DNA of 62,000 nt from positions 169,218,001 to 169,280,000 of the forward strand of contig OX597814.1 of NCBI GenBank assembly GCA_951406725.2, in the 5' to 3' direction. Below, piece after piece: positions 1 through 58,614 of the stretch. A program made the position numbers and the translations under genes. Below the pieces are notes generated by a model. It made no database searches and was not told the origin of the DNA. It saw only the letters and a list, made by a program, of their open reading frames with translations. This stretch comes from Octopus vulgaris. Lineage: Eukaryota. Position 1 is the stretch's first letter; each line of letters begins with the position of its first letter.

Positions 1-10
1 GTAAATAACG

Positions 11-250
11 TTCCGCTGGGCTGGACATGCCAAAAGGTTCACAGACAACAGGTGGACCCATGCAGTTGTCAAATGATATCCAAAAAATCAGTAAAGGCCA
101 TTCGGAAGGCCTCTACAACAATGGGAAGACAGTTTAATCAAGCTGGAAAAGAATGGCGCAGTTAAAACAGAATTGGAAGCGCATTGTGACCAGCAGTGTA
201 TAACAGAAGTTGATGGTGTGGTCGATACTGTGATAGTGTGATATGTGATG
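11..250 (+). mobile_element. RTE-clade LINE 3' end fragment (degenerate RT C-terminus plus 3' UTR)
   Basis: The frame from 11 reads FRWAGHAKRFTDNRWTHAVVK*YPKNQ*RPFGRPLQQWED. This matches the RWAGH..R..D.RW...RP.GRP..W C-terminal signature of RTE reverse transcriptases; it has internal stops. Confidence 0.75.
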
Positions 251-338
251 GAAACCTGGTAAATCTCTGGCCTTATGAGTCCCAAGGCTCATAATATATC
301 TAAATCTATTTACAGAATAAATATGTTATAAGACCTGT

Positions 339-832
339 TAGGGCAAGTGAAATCGAAATTGAACCAAATTCAATGACTGGCACCCGTGCCAGTGGAGCGC
401 TAACAGCTCCATCCAAGCGGTATCACTGTCAGAGCAGCTGTTTGGCTTCCGTGCCGGTGACACATAAAAAGCACCATTTCTGTGTGATTGTTACCAGCGT
501 CGCCTTACTGGCACTTGTGCCAATGGCACGTGAACAAAATATTCGAGCGAGTTCATTGCCAGTGCCACTGGACTGACTCCTGTGCAGGTGGCATGTAAAA
601 AATACCATTTGAGTGTGGCCATTACCAGTACCGCCAGACTGGCCCTCGTGCCAGTGGCACGTAAAAGCACCCACTACACGCTCGGAGTGGTTGGGGTTAG
701 GAAGGGCATCCAGCTGTAGAAACACTGCCAGATCAGATTGGAGCCTGGTGCAGCCATCTGGTTCGCCAGTCCGCAGTCAAATCGTCCAACCCATGCTAGC
801 ATGGAAAGTGGACATTAAATGATGATGATGAT
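339..832 (+). mobile_element. SINE-like repeat family C (internal GTGCCxxTGGCACGTAAAAGCACC repeats, CAACCCATGCTAGCATGG 3' end, (GAT)n tail)
   Basis: The same blocks recur at about 19660-20010(-), 22905-23175(+), 39710-40370(-), 41790-42110(-), 47885-48210(+) and 52510-52862(+). Confidence 0.75.
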
Positions 833-5122: not shown

Positions 5123-5158
<36 letters not shown>

Positions 5159-5305
5159 GCTTCTTTCAGTTTCTGTCTACCAAATCCACTCACAAGGCTT
5201 TGGTCGGCCCGAGGCTATAGTAGAAGACACTTGCCACGCAGTGGGACTGAACCTGGAACCATGTGGTTGGTAAGCAAGATACTTACCACACAGCCACTCC
5301 TGCAT
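4907..5305 (-). mobile_element. SINE family A copy (tRNA-like head, internal microsatellite, GTAAAAGA tail)
   Basis: Reverse complement of the AGGAGTGGCTGTGTGGTAAG...GGTTCAGTCCC head (A/B-box-like) and the conserved 3' body. More than 15 whole or partial copies occur in the window. Confidence 0.85.
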
Positions 5306-6179
5306 CAAGACTACACCTTGCTCGTTTATAAGATGAAGTGCTGGGTTCATAACATGCTGGTTTAATTGCAATTTTTTTTTTCTTTTTTGATTAAAAACAA
5401 CAGTAGCAGCAGCTATGGGATCACAATTAACAATAAATCATAAACAAATTTGGGTGCAAAGCTGCAATATGTGATCGGTTATCTAATTTTGATATTTTAT
5501 CTTCTTTATTTTTTTATGTATATTATTCATTACTGCTTTAGTGGGAATGTGATAGAGATGACATTTAAGCTATTTCTGCTATATCAAGAACATAGTATGA
5601 CAGGGTTAAAATTATTCTTGGTCTATGTTTAGGTCTCCCATCAGTTTGCTTGGCTTGAAGAATCCATCTTGCAATATGTTCCTGCAACATTCTAATTACA
5701 TGTTTGTAGTACAAGAGGTATGACTTCTCATTGCAGAGAAATAGCAGCTTGACCTGGAGAACCTCTCTGTCTCCTAGCTATGCTCCCTGTTGAGTAACAT
5801 TACTCCAGAGATCATTCTGAACCCCATTTGAGCTGTTTGTATATGTGAGTATACTTTTTGGTCATTACACAGCATTCACAACCTTGGTGAGGAAAGGCTT
5901 GAAAACTGAACTGAAGATACCAAGTTTGGCCTTTTTTTACCAACCTCCTTTTTTCAGAGAATCAATCACTGGAACTAGTGCACTACTTTGCTGGCATCTG
6001 CAATTAAAAAATCAAAACTAGTATAGTAGATTTGATCTAAGGTGTGGTTTTAGGGATACCTGGCCGTTATTTCTGATAAATATCCTTCAATTTATATCTT
6101 ACTGCTTCAGAAAAGGAAGAATGCATTGGTAAATCTAATCTCGTCCTATGGATATGCAAAAAAAAAAGAAAAAAAGGGA

Positions 6180-6896
6180 TTGGCGCAAGAGTGGCTGTGT
6201 GGTAAGTAGCTTGCTTACGAACCACATGGTTCCAGGTTCAGTCCCACTGTGTGGCATCTTGGGCAAGTGTCTTCTACTATAGCCTTGGGCTGACCAAAGC
6301 CTTGTGAGTGGATTTGGTAGACGGAAACTGAAAGAAGCCCATCGTAGTCCAACCCATGCTAGCATGGAAAACGGACGCTAAACGATGATGATGATGATGA
6401 TGATATAACGGGAAAGTTTACGAAAATAAACAAAAGACGAAGGCAGGTGGAGTACAAACAAACAAATGTATTAGTATAGCGCTCAGGAATAGAAATAGAA
6501 AAAGTCTTTTACATTTCAAGCCTACGCTCTTCGACAGAAAGATACACAGAAAAATACAAGGAGAGAAACAAGGAGAGAAAAAAAATGCGTGTAGGAGCTA
6601 ACGATCTATCATGGCGTCCTGACTTCGGACAGTGGTCAGACGCGAGAGGGACAGTAGGGGAGATAACAGGGTCAAGTGACTTCCAATATACCCCCCCCCC
6701 CCCGCCCCAAAAAAACATTGCTTGACAATCGATGCTGGTGTGCTTATGTCCCCATAACTTAGTGGTTCAGCAAAAGAGACTGATAGAATAAGTACTAGGC
6801 TTACAAAGAATAAGTCCTGGGGTTGATTTGCTCGACTAAAGGCGGTGCTCCAGCATGGCCACAGTCACATGACTGAAACAAGTAAAAGAGTAAGAG
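6180..6896 (+). mobile_element. SINE family A copy with inserts in its internal microsatellite
   Basis: Head at 6180-6345, family C tail plus (GAT)n at 6345-6404, Penelope-like insert at 6405-6690, then the 3' body at 6715-6896. Confidence 0.8.
6505..6542 (-). ncRNA. Variant hammerhead-like motif (degenerate) in a Penelope-like pseudo-LTR fragment
   Basis: Minus strand: tcttt CTGTCGA a GAGC gtag GCTT GAAATGTA aaaga. Stem I is tcttt/aaaga and stem II is GAGC/GCTT; A6 is replaced by U. Confidence 0.5.
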
Positions 6897-7411
6897 TATA
6901 GTCATTGCTAAAATACCTTCCATTATAAGGTCTGTTTAACCAATACTGACCTGGGGTTAAAAAAACCAATAACAACCTTCTACTTTATGAGTCAATGATA
7001 GCAAAAAATTTGTTGTATTTTAACTAATTATATCTCTTCACAACAAATGTGTGGCCTTGAATTAAAGTTACAAAATCATTATTATTAGAATTTTTCTCTC
7101 TCCTTCTTTTTCTATATGAAGGAGAAACAATGTTGAGAGTGAGGAATACAAATCACTTTAACCAACCAACTAGCTAGCCAACCAACTAACCAGCCAACCA
7201 GTCCAGCCAGCCAACCAGCCAGCCAACCAGTCACACTAGCTTGTTCAGAACTGCAAATTGTTAAACTCACAACACTCCCTGAATCTTGCTGTTTTGAATG
7301 AAAAATCATAAAACTCAGCAGCTCTTAATACTTCCATTATTTGCTAATCAAGCAAAGAAAAATTGTAAAATTGCCATTCATTCTAGCTCACATTCAGAGT
7401 TCAGTATTCAT

Positions 7412-8042
7412 GGCATTATAAAACCTAGAGGGTATGAAAAAAAAAAAAAAAAAGGAAATTTTTAATGGTCTTTTCTGACATGGCTAAATATTGATTGGTA
7501 ACATAGGCATAGGATCATAAATTCTACAAAAGGTAACTCTGAATAAGATTCTTAAATTATTCCTAGTATTTGACTGGTGCTATGTTTTAATGACACTGGA
7601 AGGACAACTAGTACATCCAGCCCCAGTGAGATTTCTGCTGCAATGTAAAAAGGACACATCTTAATAAAATACCCAAAGGTATGGCTGTGCGATTTTGCAA
7701 CTACACGTTTTGAGGTTCAGTTCCGGCATTATAAAACCTAGAGGGTATGAAAAAAAAAAAAAAAAGAAAAAGAAAATTTTTAATGGTCTTTTCTGACATG
7801 GCTAAATATTGATTGGTAACATAGGCATAGGATCATAAATTCTACAAAAGGTAACTCTGAATAAGATTCTTAAATTATTCCTAGTATTTGACTGGTGTTA
7901 TATTTTAATGACACCGGAAGGACAACTAGTACATCCAGCCCCAGTGAGATTTCTGCTGCAATGTAAAAGGGACATATCTTAATAAGATACCCAAAGGTAT
8001 GGCTGTGCGATTTTGCAACCACACGTTTTGAGGTTCAGCTCC
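7412..8042. repeat. Head-to-tail direct duplication of about 315 bp (7412-7724, 7725-8042)
   Basis: The two copies align end to end, with a few substitutions and a different poly-A length. Confidence 0.9.
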
Positions 8043-38068: not shown

Positions 38069-38699
38069 ATATATTTGTATCATCATCATCATCATCGTTT
38101 ATAGATATATATGTGTATGTATATGTGTATAAATTTGTGTGTGTATATGTGTATACATTTGTGTCTGTATGTATATGTGTACACGTTTGTGTATGTGTGT
38201 GTGTATATATATGTATAAATATACAAACACACACGCACACACACATATATATGTTTGTGTATGTGTCTACATGTGTGTGTGTCTGCGTGTGTATGTATAC
38301 ACACACACACACACTTACACGAGGGCTTCAGGTCCTAGACCAGCTGATGCATTGTGTTCAGCTCACGTTGCTTTGCAATTACTTTTGACGTGTGACATAT
38401 CGTATACTGTGCACCTGGTCAGGTAACATAGAATTGATGGAGGGAGTGAATTCCATCAAATACACTGCACATGTAAGTCAAGGAACCAGCTTTATTGCAC
38501 GTTGTGTTAAATTAAATCTGTGCATAATATTGAGTATCACATTCAGTACAAACATTTTATCACTATAAACAAAATTGTTTGTGTAGTTTGTTCAGCAAGA
38601 AATTGTAGAATCATATGTCTTGGATCACTAGAAACTCTAGTACTTATGCATAATATATTCTATATATATCCTAGATTTGTGTGTGTGTATATGTATATT

Positions 38700-38815
<116 letters not shown>

Positions 38816-38816
38816 C

Positions 38817-39621
38817 AAGAGAGTGACCATGTGGTCTACTCTAGCACTAAAAATAGATCCGCAAGGTTTCAGCCCCAAAAGAAATTGTTTCCGATGAAAG
38901 TTAGCACTACTACCAGCACAAATAAACAGGGCAAATAAACATAGCAAAATGTAGATTAGTTCGAGACAATTGTTTCACTATTAATAAATTATGTAATTTT
39001 ACTTACATAAATTCATCTGTAGCTCCTCGGTCGAACCCGTCCAGAATACAATTTACCCAATCGCACGCTAGACTTCACCATAACGATAAACGCACGTGCG
39101 GTCGAGTCGATTGTACTCACTGTTATAATTTAAGTGCCCCTGTTAATTTTGGATGTAGTATCTGTTTCCGTGAATTTTGGTGGGCGATACACACTTAAAT
39201 TATAACAGCGAGTACAATCGACTCGACCGCACGTGCGTTTATCGTTATGGTGAAGTCTAGCGTGCGATTGGGTAAATTGTATTCTGGACGGGTTCGACCG
39301 AGGAGCTACAGATGAATTTATGTAAGTAAGATTACATAATTTATTAATAGCGAAACAATTGTCTCGAACTAATCTACATTTTGTTATGTTTATTTGCCCT
39401 GTTCATTTGTGCTGGTAGTAGTGCTAACTTTCATCGGAAACAATTTCTTTTGTGGCTGAAACCTTGCGGATCTATTTTTAGTGCTAGAGTAGACCACATG
39501 GTCACTCTCTTACATTTATGTATAAAATGTATCATAATCCGGGTCTTTTATGCACTAAGCCACTTGGTGGTAAATGGATGTACTATTAAATTAGTATCCA
39601 ATTTTATCACCCTTATCGGTT

Positions 39622-39625
<4 letters not shown>
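38817..39625 (+). mobile_element. Long fold-back element (320-bp arms) with hammerhead motifs and 3' tail; Penelope-like
   Basis: Arms 38817-39136 and 39192-39511 have only a handful of mismatches and a 55-bp spacer. A tail at 39512-39625 is on one side only; both flanks are (AT)n. Confidence 0.85.
39292..39369 (+). ncRNA. Hammerhead ribozyme motif (U4C core variant); mirror copy at 38959-39036(-)
   Basis: gttcga CCGAGGA GCTA...TAGC GAAAC AATT GTC tcgaac. Stem I is 6 bp, stem II closes with G-C, stem III is palindromic and the triplet is GUC. Confidence 0.72.
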
Positions 39626-39662
<37 letters not shown>

Positions 39663-40399
39663 TACATATACACACACACACACACATATATATATATACA
39701 TATCATCATCATCATCATCATCGTTTAGCATCTGCTTCCCATGCTAGCATGGGTTGGACGGTTCAACTGGGGTCTGGGAAGCCAGAAGGCTGCACCAGGC
39801 CCAGTCTGATCTGTCAATGTTTCTACGGCTGGATGCCCTTCCTAACGCCAACCACTCCGTGAGTGTAGTGGGTGCTTTTTACGTGCCAGACGAGGCTGGC
39901 AAACGGCCACAATCGGATGGTGCTCTTTATGTGCCACCAGCACGGGGGCCAGGCGAGACTGGCAACGGCCACGAATGGATGGTGCTTTTTACGTGCCATA
40001 TATATGTATATATGTATCATCATCATCATCATCATTATCCTCGTTTAACATCCGTTTTCCATGCTAGCATGGGTTGGACGGTTCGACCGGGGTCTGGAAA
40101 GCCAGGAGGCTGCTCCAGGCTCGAGTCTGTTCTGGCAGAGTTTCTACAGCTGGATGCCCTTCCCAACACCAACCACTCCATGAGTGTAGTGGGTGCTTTT
40201 TACGTACCACCAGCACAGATACCAGGCGAGGCTGGCAATGGCCACGATTGGTTGGTGCTTTTTACGTGCCACCGGCACGGAAGCCAATCAAAGGCAGCAC
40301 TGGCATCAGCCATGTTCGGATGGTGCTTCTTATGTGCCACCGGCACAGGTATCGCAGCTACAATTTCCATATATATATATTTATATATATATATTTGAG

Positions 40400-57173: not shown

Positions 57174-58089
57174 ATGGTCAAGATTGGTTGTGTGAATGCG
57201 CGTGGCTTGGGGTCTCCTTGGAAACAAGGATACCTCCTAAATGACATGAAGTCACACGATTTGGGAATCAGCCATAAGTGAGACCAGACTCCACGAGCCA
57301 CGGGCCCTAAAGTCCATGTTTGGCGGACAGTTTAACATTTATTTTGCTCCCTGTCTGCCGAGGATGGGCGGTAGTGGCACCGCGGTACTTTTTCACTAGA
57401 GCCTGGATCTCGAAGTCAAGAAGATATTCGTAGACCCGGAGGGTAGACTGGTCGTTCTGGATGTCAACGGTAGCAGTGGGTGTGCTTTTCGACTCGTATC
57501 AGTCTACGCACCGCCTTTAACAGGTCGGCCGGATTTCTTTCAACGTCTAGAAGTATTCCTGGGAACGTCTCGTCCTTTACTTTTAGTGGGGGATTGGAAT
57601 GCTACCTTGGACACGCATCTAGACTATGTGGTGAGAGACAAAAACAGAAGGGGATGCAAATGCTTCAGAGACCTGCTCAGACAATTCCAACTGTCTGACA
57701 GGTACCGACTCGACCACCCAAATGCACCAACGTGGACATGGAGTAACCGCAGTGGGTCGTCGAGATCGTATCTAGATAGGATACTGTGTAGGACAGTAGA
57801 CAAGGATAACTTAGGATGTCCACAATTCCACACAGTCAGCTACACAGATCACAAATTCGTGACATGTACGCTAGACTTAGATAAGGCACATAGACAGGGT
57901 CCTGGTTACTGGAAACTGAACGTATCATTCCCGTCCAGACAAGATTTCAGAGACAGAATCAACACGTTTGTAAAAAGGGCTTTAACGGGAGCCATTGTCA
58001 ACAACAAATGGTGGTTCGCCCTCAAGAGAGCAGTAAAAGCGGAAGCAATTAGATATAGCAAGGCGCTAGCCGTAGATAGAAATAGAGTA
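57174..58089 (+). pseudogene. Frameshifted ORF2 apurinic endonuclease domain, copy 1
   Basis: MVKIGCVNARGL, SETR, LVSVYAP, VGDWNATLD, WTW...SYLDRIL, DHK and GPGYWKLN are L1/Tx1 APE motifs. Confidence 0.88.
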
Positions 58090-58614
58090 TCACTTGAAGA
58101 GGAAAGTGAGAGTAGAGAGGTAAGTTTTGTCTAGTGAATGTTTTAAAAAAAGATGGGTGAATGTAGCAAGGATGGCGCGTATGAATGACGAAGCCACCTT
58201 GACTATGATTCTATGAACCGTAAAAATTAATACAGAGAGTTGCTTATTTGCAAAAAAAAAAATAAAAGAAAGTAATATAACATGTGACTTCATTGACCGA
58301 GGTTACCGTGGTCTTTTCCGTAGGCTTTTCTTTCCACGGGTAAACCTCACCTGTCCTCCCCTTTGCACTTCATATTGACATTTCTGTGATAACGATCCCT
58401 ATTGATCAATTCCCCCCCTTTTTTTTTAAATTTTATTTTATCTCCCCCTTTTTTTGTCCTCTTTCTTTCCATTTACGATCTCTTTTGATCGAAAATCAAA
58501 CCCCCTTCTTTTACTCCCAAAAGAAAAGCTCTACCTTGTAATTTTGTTCTGTCTGTGTGCAGCCCTGTGTGGCTAATAAAGAAACATATCTATCTATCTA
58601 CATATGTATGTATG

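Follow-up and report, generated by a model that had tools for sequence, protein, structure and literature searches.

The fold-back in the window (the whole 62-kb stretch of DNA that was analysed) is very probably one insertion of a non-autonomous and non-coding 504-nt hammerhead retroelement of the Penelope-like element (PLE) or animal non-LTR retrozyme kind within a (TA)n microsatellite, with its copies placed head-to-head. The locus belongs to a known class, in the usual head-to-head form of insertion, and is in that respect mostly ordinary.

Structure of the fold-back and its two hammerheads

The arms of the inverted repeat (38804–39136 and 39192–39524) were 333 nt long and 97% complementary, with a spacer of 55 nt. 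An earlier sequence-only reading had recognized the fold-back correctly; its arm length of 320 bp fell short of the measured value. When mapped onto the 504-nt unit of the repeat family described below, the element had the layout [- 394..53][+ 7..504], between (TA)n tracts (Table 1). By eye, the left copy reaches the CAGGGG at 39137–39142. At its outward-facing 3' end this copy stops at unit 394, with no tail, and the right end of the right copy is uncertain by ~10 nt within the (TA)n. The apparent loop of the fold-back corresponds to the first ~50 nt of the right copy, i.e. the surplus 5' part of the longer copy. The earlier reading had placed the element at 38817–39625: the stretch 39525–39625 does belong to it, but on the right side only, and the left arm starts at 38804. 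The GC content of the element was 36–37%, and no ORF of ≥180 aa, the shortest frame listed, was present inside it.

Table 1 Coordinates of the insertion, its flanking tracts and its hammerheads in the window.
Feature	Position	Strand	Basis
(TA)n microsatellite, presumed target tract, left flank	38688..38815	.	TRF row and sequence
Fold-back proper	38804..39524	.	Inverted-repeat row: 333 nt, 97%
Left copy of 504-nt unit, 5'-truncated, unit ~53–394	38804..39142	-	L001 1113–1451 = unit 394..55
Left-copy hammerhead, core CCGAGGA	38959..39036	-	Reverse complement reading (39036–38959)
Right copy, nearly full length, unit 7–504	39143..39625	+	L001 1452–1945 = unit 7..504; junction sequence
Right-copy hammerhead, type I	39292..39369	+	Direct reading; constrained fold 2.8 kcal/mol above MFE
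Right copy, stem I (GUUCGA/UCGAAC, 6 bp)	39292–39297 / 39364–39369	+	
Right copy, core C3-C4-G5-A6-G7-G8-A9 (C4 = 39299)	39298–39304	+	
Right copy, stem II (GCUA...UAGC) with long distal hairpin	39305–39351	+	
Right copy, G12-A13-A14	39352–39354	+	
Right copy, helix III (A-U and C-G, 2 bp, closed by AAUU; ACAAUUGU, palindromic)	39355–39362	+	
Right copy, C17 of the GUC triplet (predicted cut after this C)	39363	+	
'Tail', unit 395–504, last 110 nt of unit, right outer end only	39525..39625	+	Unit mapping
(TA)n/(CA)n microsatellite, right flank	39626..39700	.	Sequence

Direct reading bore out the earlier description of mirrored hammerheads with the core CCGAGGA, C at position 4, a 6-bp stem I and a GUC triplet in both arms. 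The two hammerheads lie on opposite strands and read outward. In the left copy, C4 is opposite 39029, and cleavage is predicted between the bases opposite 38965 and 38964. This copy has one additional deviation, C11.1 to U opposite 38977, by which the conserved G10.1-C11.1 pair becomes G·U. The departures of the window copies from the RF00163 core consensus (C3 U4 G5 A6 N7 G8 A9 ... G12 A13 A14, NUH) were C4 in both arms and U11.1 in the left arm; the remaining core bases and the GUC were intact in both copies.

Rfam detected no hammerhead in the window, neither at the gathering threshold nor at E ≤ 10, and restricting the search to 39280–39380 did not change this. Runs on the whole window, on 38700–39700 and on three 3.3-kb loci returned microsatellite-driven miRNA artefacts only, and within the family a match to RF00163 was obtained only when the search was confined to ~100 nt of a canonical copy. 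The matches to mir-297, mir-1277 and mir-466 at 38700–38770 and 39617–39700 scored up to 55 bits, which is below gathering, and were rejected as (TA)n/(TG)n artefacts.

When folded as RNA, 38804–39625 was predicted to form a single hairpin of ~335 bp with an energy of -613 kcal/mol, compared with -188 ± 7 kcal/mol for shuffled sequences (z = -63). This prediction agrees with the earlier proposal that read-through from either side would sequester the ribozyme: whichever strand is transcribed, the ribozyme arm would follow its complement and be taken up in the duplex.

The element was CpG-rich relative to its flanks, as previously noted, with an observed/expected ratio of 1.19 (34 CpG in 822 nt) as against 0.45 in the 62-kb window and 0.38–0.46 in the 5-kb flanks, a value within the top 1% of same-size windows. 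The subfamily consensus sequences had ratios of ~1.3, and all sampled family copies fell between 1.0 and 1.5. CpG richness is a trait of the family, which is younger or less methylated than its CpG-depleted surroundings. The suggestion that the element is young holds only relative to this CpG-depleted background; the family-wide CpG richness does not show this copy to be especially young. The two arms were already 3.6% diverged, and among the changes was the decay of CpG at 38977 and one other site of the left arm. The window copy was among the more diverged of the copies sampled.

Two other repeats were observed in the window. A ~320-bp tandem duplication (86–90% identity) at 39687–40350 consists of a SINE-like repeat that starts with (ATC)n and has ~62-nt internal repeats; unrelated SINE-like sequences also adjoined the (TA)n tracts at L020, L023 and L029. 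An open frame at 57400–58131 (+) encodes an Exo_endo_phos (AP endonuclease) domain (E = 3e-7) and is probably a LINE fragment.

The repeat family and its ribozyme

Matches to the arm were present on many chromosomes of the 2.8-Gb genome; a first look gave 1409 candidates, of which at least 55 were scored. L030 served to derive the 504-nt unit, and the family loci compared were L001–L030 and L061–L065. The unit is non-coding and contains one type I hammerhead, whose core starts at unit 167 and whose cleavage site is at 231; alternative 3' ends are located at 394 and 504. Copies were found singly, in partial direct tandems with 503|1 junctions (at many loci), and as head-to-head pairs of the form [- copy][+ copy] in which the inverted copy is 5'-truncated. 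Head-to-head pairs made up 20 of 31 distinct loci, a proportion which, like the others reported here, was obtained from best-scoring matches and may not apply to old copies. Tandem arrays of 2–3 units with a period of 503–506 were found at G000:C9:101600414.., C9:106833476 and C18:16793175. The window element and every family copy inspected had (TA)n on both sides.

The architecture of the head-to-head insertions was variable at the centre and regular at the ends. The position of the 5'-5' junction was different at each locus, and the 3' ends faced outward. The outer ends were exactly 394 and 504 in 11 of the 20 insertions and lay within 18 nt of these positions in 14; in none of the 20 was the outer-end position identical on both sides. 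Genome-wide, all 11 close inverted hammerhead pairs had the order (-,+), and none had the order (+,-). The 110-nt interval between 394 and 504 resembles the PLE 'tail', at ~3 times the length described.

At two loci, L007 (~1167–1171) and L013 (~1165–1169), the 5' junctions of the + copies lay 1–2 nt past the cleavage site (unit 232–234). Such junctions accounted for 2 of ~40 ends, compared with ~0.3 expected by chance, and could reflect either microhomology (GAAC / T) or cDNA synthesis that ran off the end of self-cleaved RNA. The idea that some insertions copy hammerhead-cleaved RNA was left as a note, the two junctions both having possible microhomology.

The consensus core of the family hammerhead is CUGANGA, and nearly all copies other than those discussed below carried CUGAGGA or CUGAAGA. 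In a set of 65 copies anchored outside the core, 58 had the canonical CUGANGA. The canonical copy at L018:2035–2111 matched the full RF00163 model with 31.5 bits (E = 1.2e-6 in a 106-nt search); its score remained 2.5 bits under the gathering score of 34 because loop II contains an insertion of 34 nt. Stem II is unusual in its length, with 4 bp, an internal loop and then ~14 bp. The hammerhead fold was 1.3–3.6 kcal/mol above the unconstrained MFE, and stems I and II were kept by the MFE structure every time.

Across subfamilies all four bases were found at N7, and C3, G5, A6, G8 and A9 were fixed except for singletons. Compensatory changes were observed at 2.2-1.2 (U-A/A-U/G-C/G·U), 2.1-1.1 (G-C/A-U/G·U) and 10.4-11.4 (A-U/G-C). 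Among 45 distinct sequences from several subfamilies, 95.9% of cells were paired as against 92.3% after shuffling, and double-change cells numbered 48 as against 22, counts that are inflated by kinship among the sequences. The observed values were reached in 0 of 500 shuffles, and slid controls were 25–44% paired. Within the 27 closest sequences there was no covariation signal, shuffles giving equal values; the signal was present once distant subfamilies were added. The invariant core, the free N7 and the covarying stems imply selection on ribozyme function in the source elements.

A search of the whole genome with RF00163 listed other type I hammerheads, at G000:C5:6546758–6546804 and ~48 other places, with scores at or close to the threshold of the model (45.5 bits for the best). 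They occur in compact forms of 42–47 nt and long forms of ~105 nt and presumably represent further PLE or retrozyme families.

Descent and frequency of the C4 variant

Eight derived substitutions relative to the subfamily, including U4C and G2.1A, were common to both arms and to L003 (G000:C2:171617415–171617743), a solo copy on another chromosome. G2.1A changes the core-adjacent G·U of stem I to A-U. Each of these three GA-CCGAGGA copies was 96.4% identical to the other two. Since the derived substitutions are shared by both arms and L003, U4C predates the window insertion, and the C4 source gave rise to at least two insertions. The earlier reading had offered, as the alternative to a functional core variant, a mutation that preceded arm duplication. 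A mutation before the arms is what the substitutions shared with L003 indicate; duplication into a hairpin gives way to head-to-head integration, the arrangement at 20 of 31 loci with junctions that differ. An origin of the lineage substitutions in ADAR-type hyper-editing was rejected, A-to-G accounting for only one of the eight shared changes.

The frequency of U4C among copies, a check suggested by the sequence-only reading, was determined both genome-wide and in the anchored set. The variant was not private to this locus, as the refuting condition named in that reading would require: C4 was present in 19 of 148 related hammerheads (TTCNNC[C]GANGAGCTNCNGAT, 19 matches; U4 version, 129), and in 4 of the 65 anchored copies, in which C3A, G5A and G8A were found once each. 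The C4 copies were spread over many chromosomes and had at least four backgrounds, namely GA-CCGAGGA (three copies), AG-CCGAGGA (seven), GG-CCGAUGA (five) and GYC-CCGACGA (three), plus a single GG-CCGAGGA. The intact 3' anchor AATTGTCNNGAA was matched by 15 of the 19, and most of those 15 also kept the GAAA. Hence, C4 is neither private nor dominant in the family: it is a recurring minority variant, and the sole core deviation observed in lineages that continued spreading. Substitutions of U4 in the hammerhead are generally strongly deleterious, and C4 probably lowers self-cleavage without abolishing it.

An inverted pair at G000:C4:134463960 (-) and G000:C4:134464113 (+) had C4 in one arm (TTCAGCCGAGG) and U4 with a different stem I in the other (TTCTGCUGAGG). 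This difference suggests that the two arms of a single insertion may derive from different template RNAs.

The recurrence of C4 might be explained by function. C4 would then be a tolerated or favoured variant of the core: CCGANGA would cleave adequately in vivo, perhaps more slowly, sparing full-length template RNA, and selection would let C4 sources amplify. Being limited to the ribozyme, this explanation does not conflict with an origin of the fold-back by insertion. The number of C4 copies and the diversity of their backgrounds and chromosomes are in its favour, as are the retention of the 3' anchor and the GAAA, the singleton status of the other core substitutions (1/65 each), and a core that is otherwise invariant across subfamilies with N7 free and covarying stems. 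Two C4 lineages also have an A opposite the stem I G·U position, giving A-U; however, the A-U change of the AG lineage was found with U4 as well and is therefore not a specific compensation. A precedent is provided by a natural viroid U4C variant that is much less active in vitro and sufficient in vivo (Perreault et al, 2011; PMC3088659). The viroid shares the identical core substitution in a natural propagating RNA, but its hammerhead is of type III with tertiary contacts, whereas that of the family is a type I retroelement hammerhead. The counts, moreover, represent copies and not events, so that a few lucky sources could suffice, and U4 is part of the conserved uridine turn, where most substitutions do strong harm (Perreault et al, 2011; PMC3088659). 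Hammerhead catalytic mutants were inserted normally by a PLE protein in vitro (Frangieh et al, 2024; PMC11167929), and because such insertion is independent of hammerhead cleavage, C4 lineages could still spread, which need not mean that they are active. Weighing these points, we regard a functional C4 as possible and rather doubtful.

Integration of the unit and its relation to Penelope-like elements

The family resembles PLEs in many respects. In PLEs, 5' truncation is frequent, partial tandems make up pLTRs, an inverted copy that is itself 5'-truncated lies beside the 5' end, a tail of 30–40 bp is present at only one end, the pLTRs contain hammerheads and, in one clade, (TA)n is a preferred target (Craig et al, 2021; PMC8557442). 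Type I hammerheads of metazoans have a helix I of 6 bp, a helix II of 4 bp and a helix III of 1–2 bp with a small palindromic loop favouring dimers, and pairs of hammerheads on opposite strands, separated by 100–700 bp, have been described (Cervera & de la Pena, 2014; PMC4209133). The 504-nt family has the same 5' truncation, partial tandems, inverted 5'-truncated copy at the 5' side and (TA)n target and a comparable extension at one end, together with a type I hammerhead whose helix III has 2 bp and whose loop is palindromic (ACAAUUGU), and opposite-strand pairs a few hundred bp apart. It differs from PLEs in that its unit is 504 nt long and non-coding, lacks an RT/EN ORF and showed no DNA similarity to those PLEs of the genome with which it was compared, and in its one-sided extension (~110 nt vs 30–40 nt) and unusually long stem II.

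The family also compares well with animal non-LTR retrozymes, which are non-coding tandem repeats with type I hammerheads and circular RNAs (Cervera & de la Pena, 2020; PMC7229834) and have been argued to derive from PLE termini (Li, Clavereau & Pollet, 2026 preprint; doi 10.64898/2026.07.22.740005). Common features are the absence of coding capacity, a low GC content (~36–37% in the family), one type I hammerhead per unit, the tandem arrangement and the co-occurrence with PLEs; in tandem units, two cleavages would release unit-length RNA, as predicted for the family. In contrast, the family unit is longer (504 nt vs 150–450 nt), and its arrays are mostly of 1–3 units and often inverted.

Based on these likenesses, we infer that the fold-back arose by two-strand priming. 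A PLE enzyme would cut both DNA strands in the (TA)n, and each 3' end would prime reverse transcription on element RNA. The two cDNAs would be directed away from each other and joined mid-way at an arbitrary point, here left unit 53 to right unit 7, to give head-to-head copies with their 3' ends outward. One cDNA would begin at unit 394, the internal site, and its counterpart at unit 504, the distal one, which would leave the 110-nt tail on one side only. The mirrored hammerheads would be a by-product of this insertion geometry, C4 and G2.1A having already been in the source RNA and copied into both arms. A related process is LINE-1 twin priming, or 5' inversion, in which both cut target strands prime cDNA and an inverted 5' segment results. 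The priming from both cut strands is the same, but LINE-1 inverts an upstream part of one RNA, whereas the arms of the family copy the same region from defined 3' starts. With one hammerhead per strand, release of unit-length RNA from the locus is impossible, and the element at the window site is most likely an inert relic.

In support of insertion, the head-to-head order at 20 of 31 loci comes with variable junctions and the 394/504 asymmetry; the adjacent inverted copy and the (TA)n flanks match published PLE traits, and the one-sided tail resembles that of PLEs. Biochemical work on a PLE protein is in line with this: it cleaves and extends both strands in vitro, and reverse transcription starts at two internal sites, the interval between which is the tail (Frangieh et al, 2024; PMC11167929). 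Several observations count against the model. The one-sided tail is 110 nt rather than the 30–40 nt of PLEs, target-site duplications are unreadable inside (TA)n, the C4 copies of the window were not matched by Rfam and canonical copies scored 2.5 bits under the gathering score, and a comparison with 30 GIY-YIG loci and three full PLE copies revealed no autonomous PLE with DNA similarity to the unit.

Long and near-perfect inverted arms with a short spacer are also typical of Foldback elements, and the structure might thus have arisen at the DNA level, either as a Foldback/MITE DNA transposon bearing long terminal inverted repeats or as a palindrome formed by replication or repair after insertion. 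However, each arm represents a sense copy of an oriented unit, and this unit is also found singly and directly repeated; the junctions vary by locus, and the orientation was head-to-head in 11 of 11 pairs. In place of the shared ends and terminal inverted repeats with target-site duplication of Foldback elements and MITEs, the outer ends were asymmetric (394 vs 504). Moreover, the identity between the arms (96.4%) was no higher than that to a copy on another chromosome. We consider an origin at the DNA level extremely improbable. The predicted hairpin of ~335 bp (-613 kcal/mol) raises a different question, namely a possible co-option of the locus as a gene for a hairpin RNA, whose read-through duplex would be diced to endogenous siRNAs against the family or be heavily A-to-I edited. 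Head-to-head pairs are the commonest arrangement of the family, so that such hairpins would be a regular by-product. Against co-option, the arms are 3.6% apart with CpG decay, as for neutral sequence, and the eight lineage-defining substitutions have no A-to-G bias; we consider it unlikely.

A source of the enzyme required for two-strand priming may be present in the genome. GIY-YIG candidates numbered at least 5955 genome-wide in a first look, many with 781-aa open frames. PLEs of this EN+ type have been reported from animals only, except for a single horizontal transfer to conifers. At L066 (G000:C16:20834500–20843500), an ORF1 of 346 aa and an ORF2 of 765 aa, the latter with RVT_1 plus a GIY-YIG domain at the C terminus, were found together with 456-nt direct repeats (pLTRs) that were 99.3% identical and with (TA)n on both sides. 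Judged by this sequence, L066 is apparently an intact and recently active PLE, and L067 and L068 are further full PLE copies. A simple scan revealed no canonical hammerhead core in the L066 repeats, and a generic type I hammerhead regex scan of the PLE loci returned one weak match. No DNA similarity between the 504-nt unit and an autonomous PLE was found beyond TA-rich runs in 30 GIY-YIG loci, L066–L068 and L061, a comparison that sampled a small fraction of the PLE diversity of the genome. Nevertheless, we infer that the unit is mobilised by a resident PLE.

At L061, a second, divergent and 5'-truncated PLE was observed at 5146–6419 (-) and 6724–7450, with 37–43% aa identity to ORF2 of L066. 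It lies ~300 nt from the family insertion in the same (TA)n tract, which is consistent with a shared target preference.

A bolder combined reading, which we advance only tentatively and think somewhat unlikely to hold in full, is that U4C is a tolerated natural core variant with several origins and amplifying sources, every other core position being fixed, and that the strict 394/504 pairing records coordinated, asymmetric two-strand priming in PLE integration. If U4C is indeed tolerated, the family would be a natural test of the amount of cleavage that a retrozyme or PLE needs. The recurrent C4 and the clean covariation would also make it a ready natural substrate pair for probing the U4 requirement. 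The head-to-head order in 11 of 11 pairs and the 394/504 pairing in 11–14 of 20 loci fit the two-strand extension from two internal start sites seen in vitro, and the 394/504 asymmetry is an addition to that in vitro PLE work, which did not report asymmetry. Fold-backs with mirrored ribozymes are to be expected in invertebrate genomes wherever PLE-type elements are active, and should be read as products of integration and not as designed hairpin genes.
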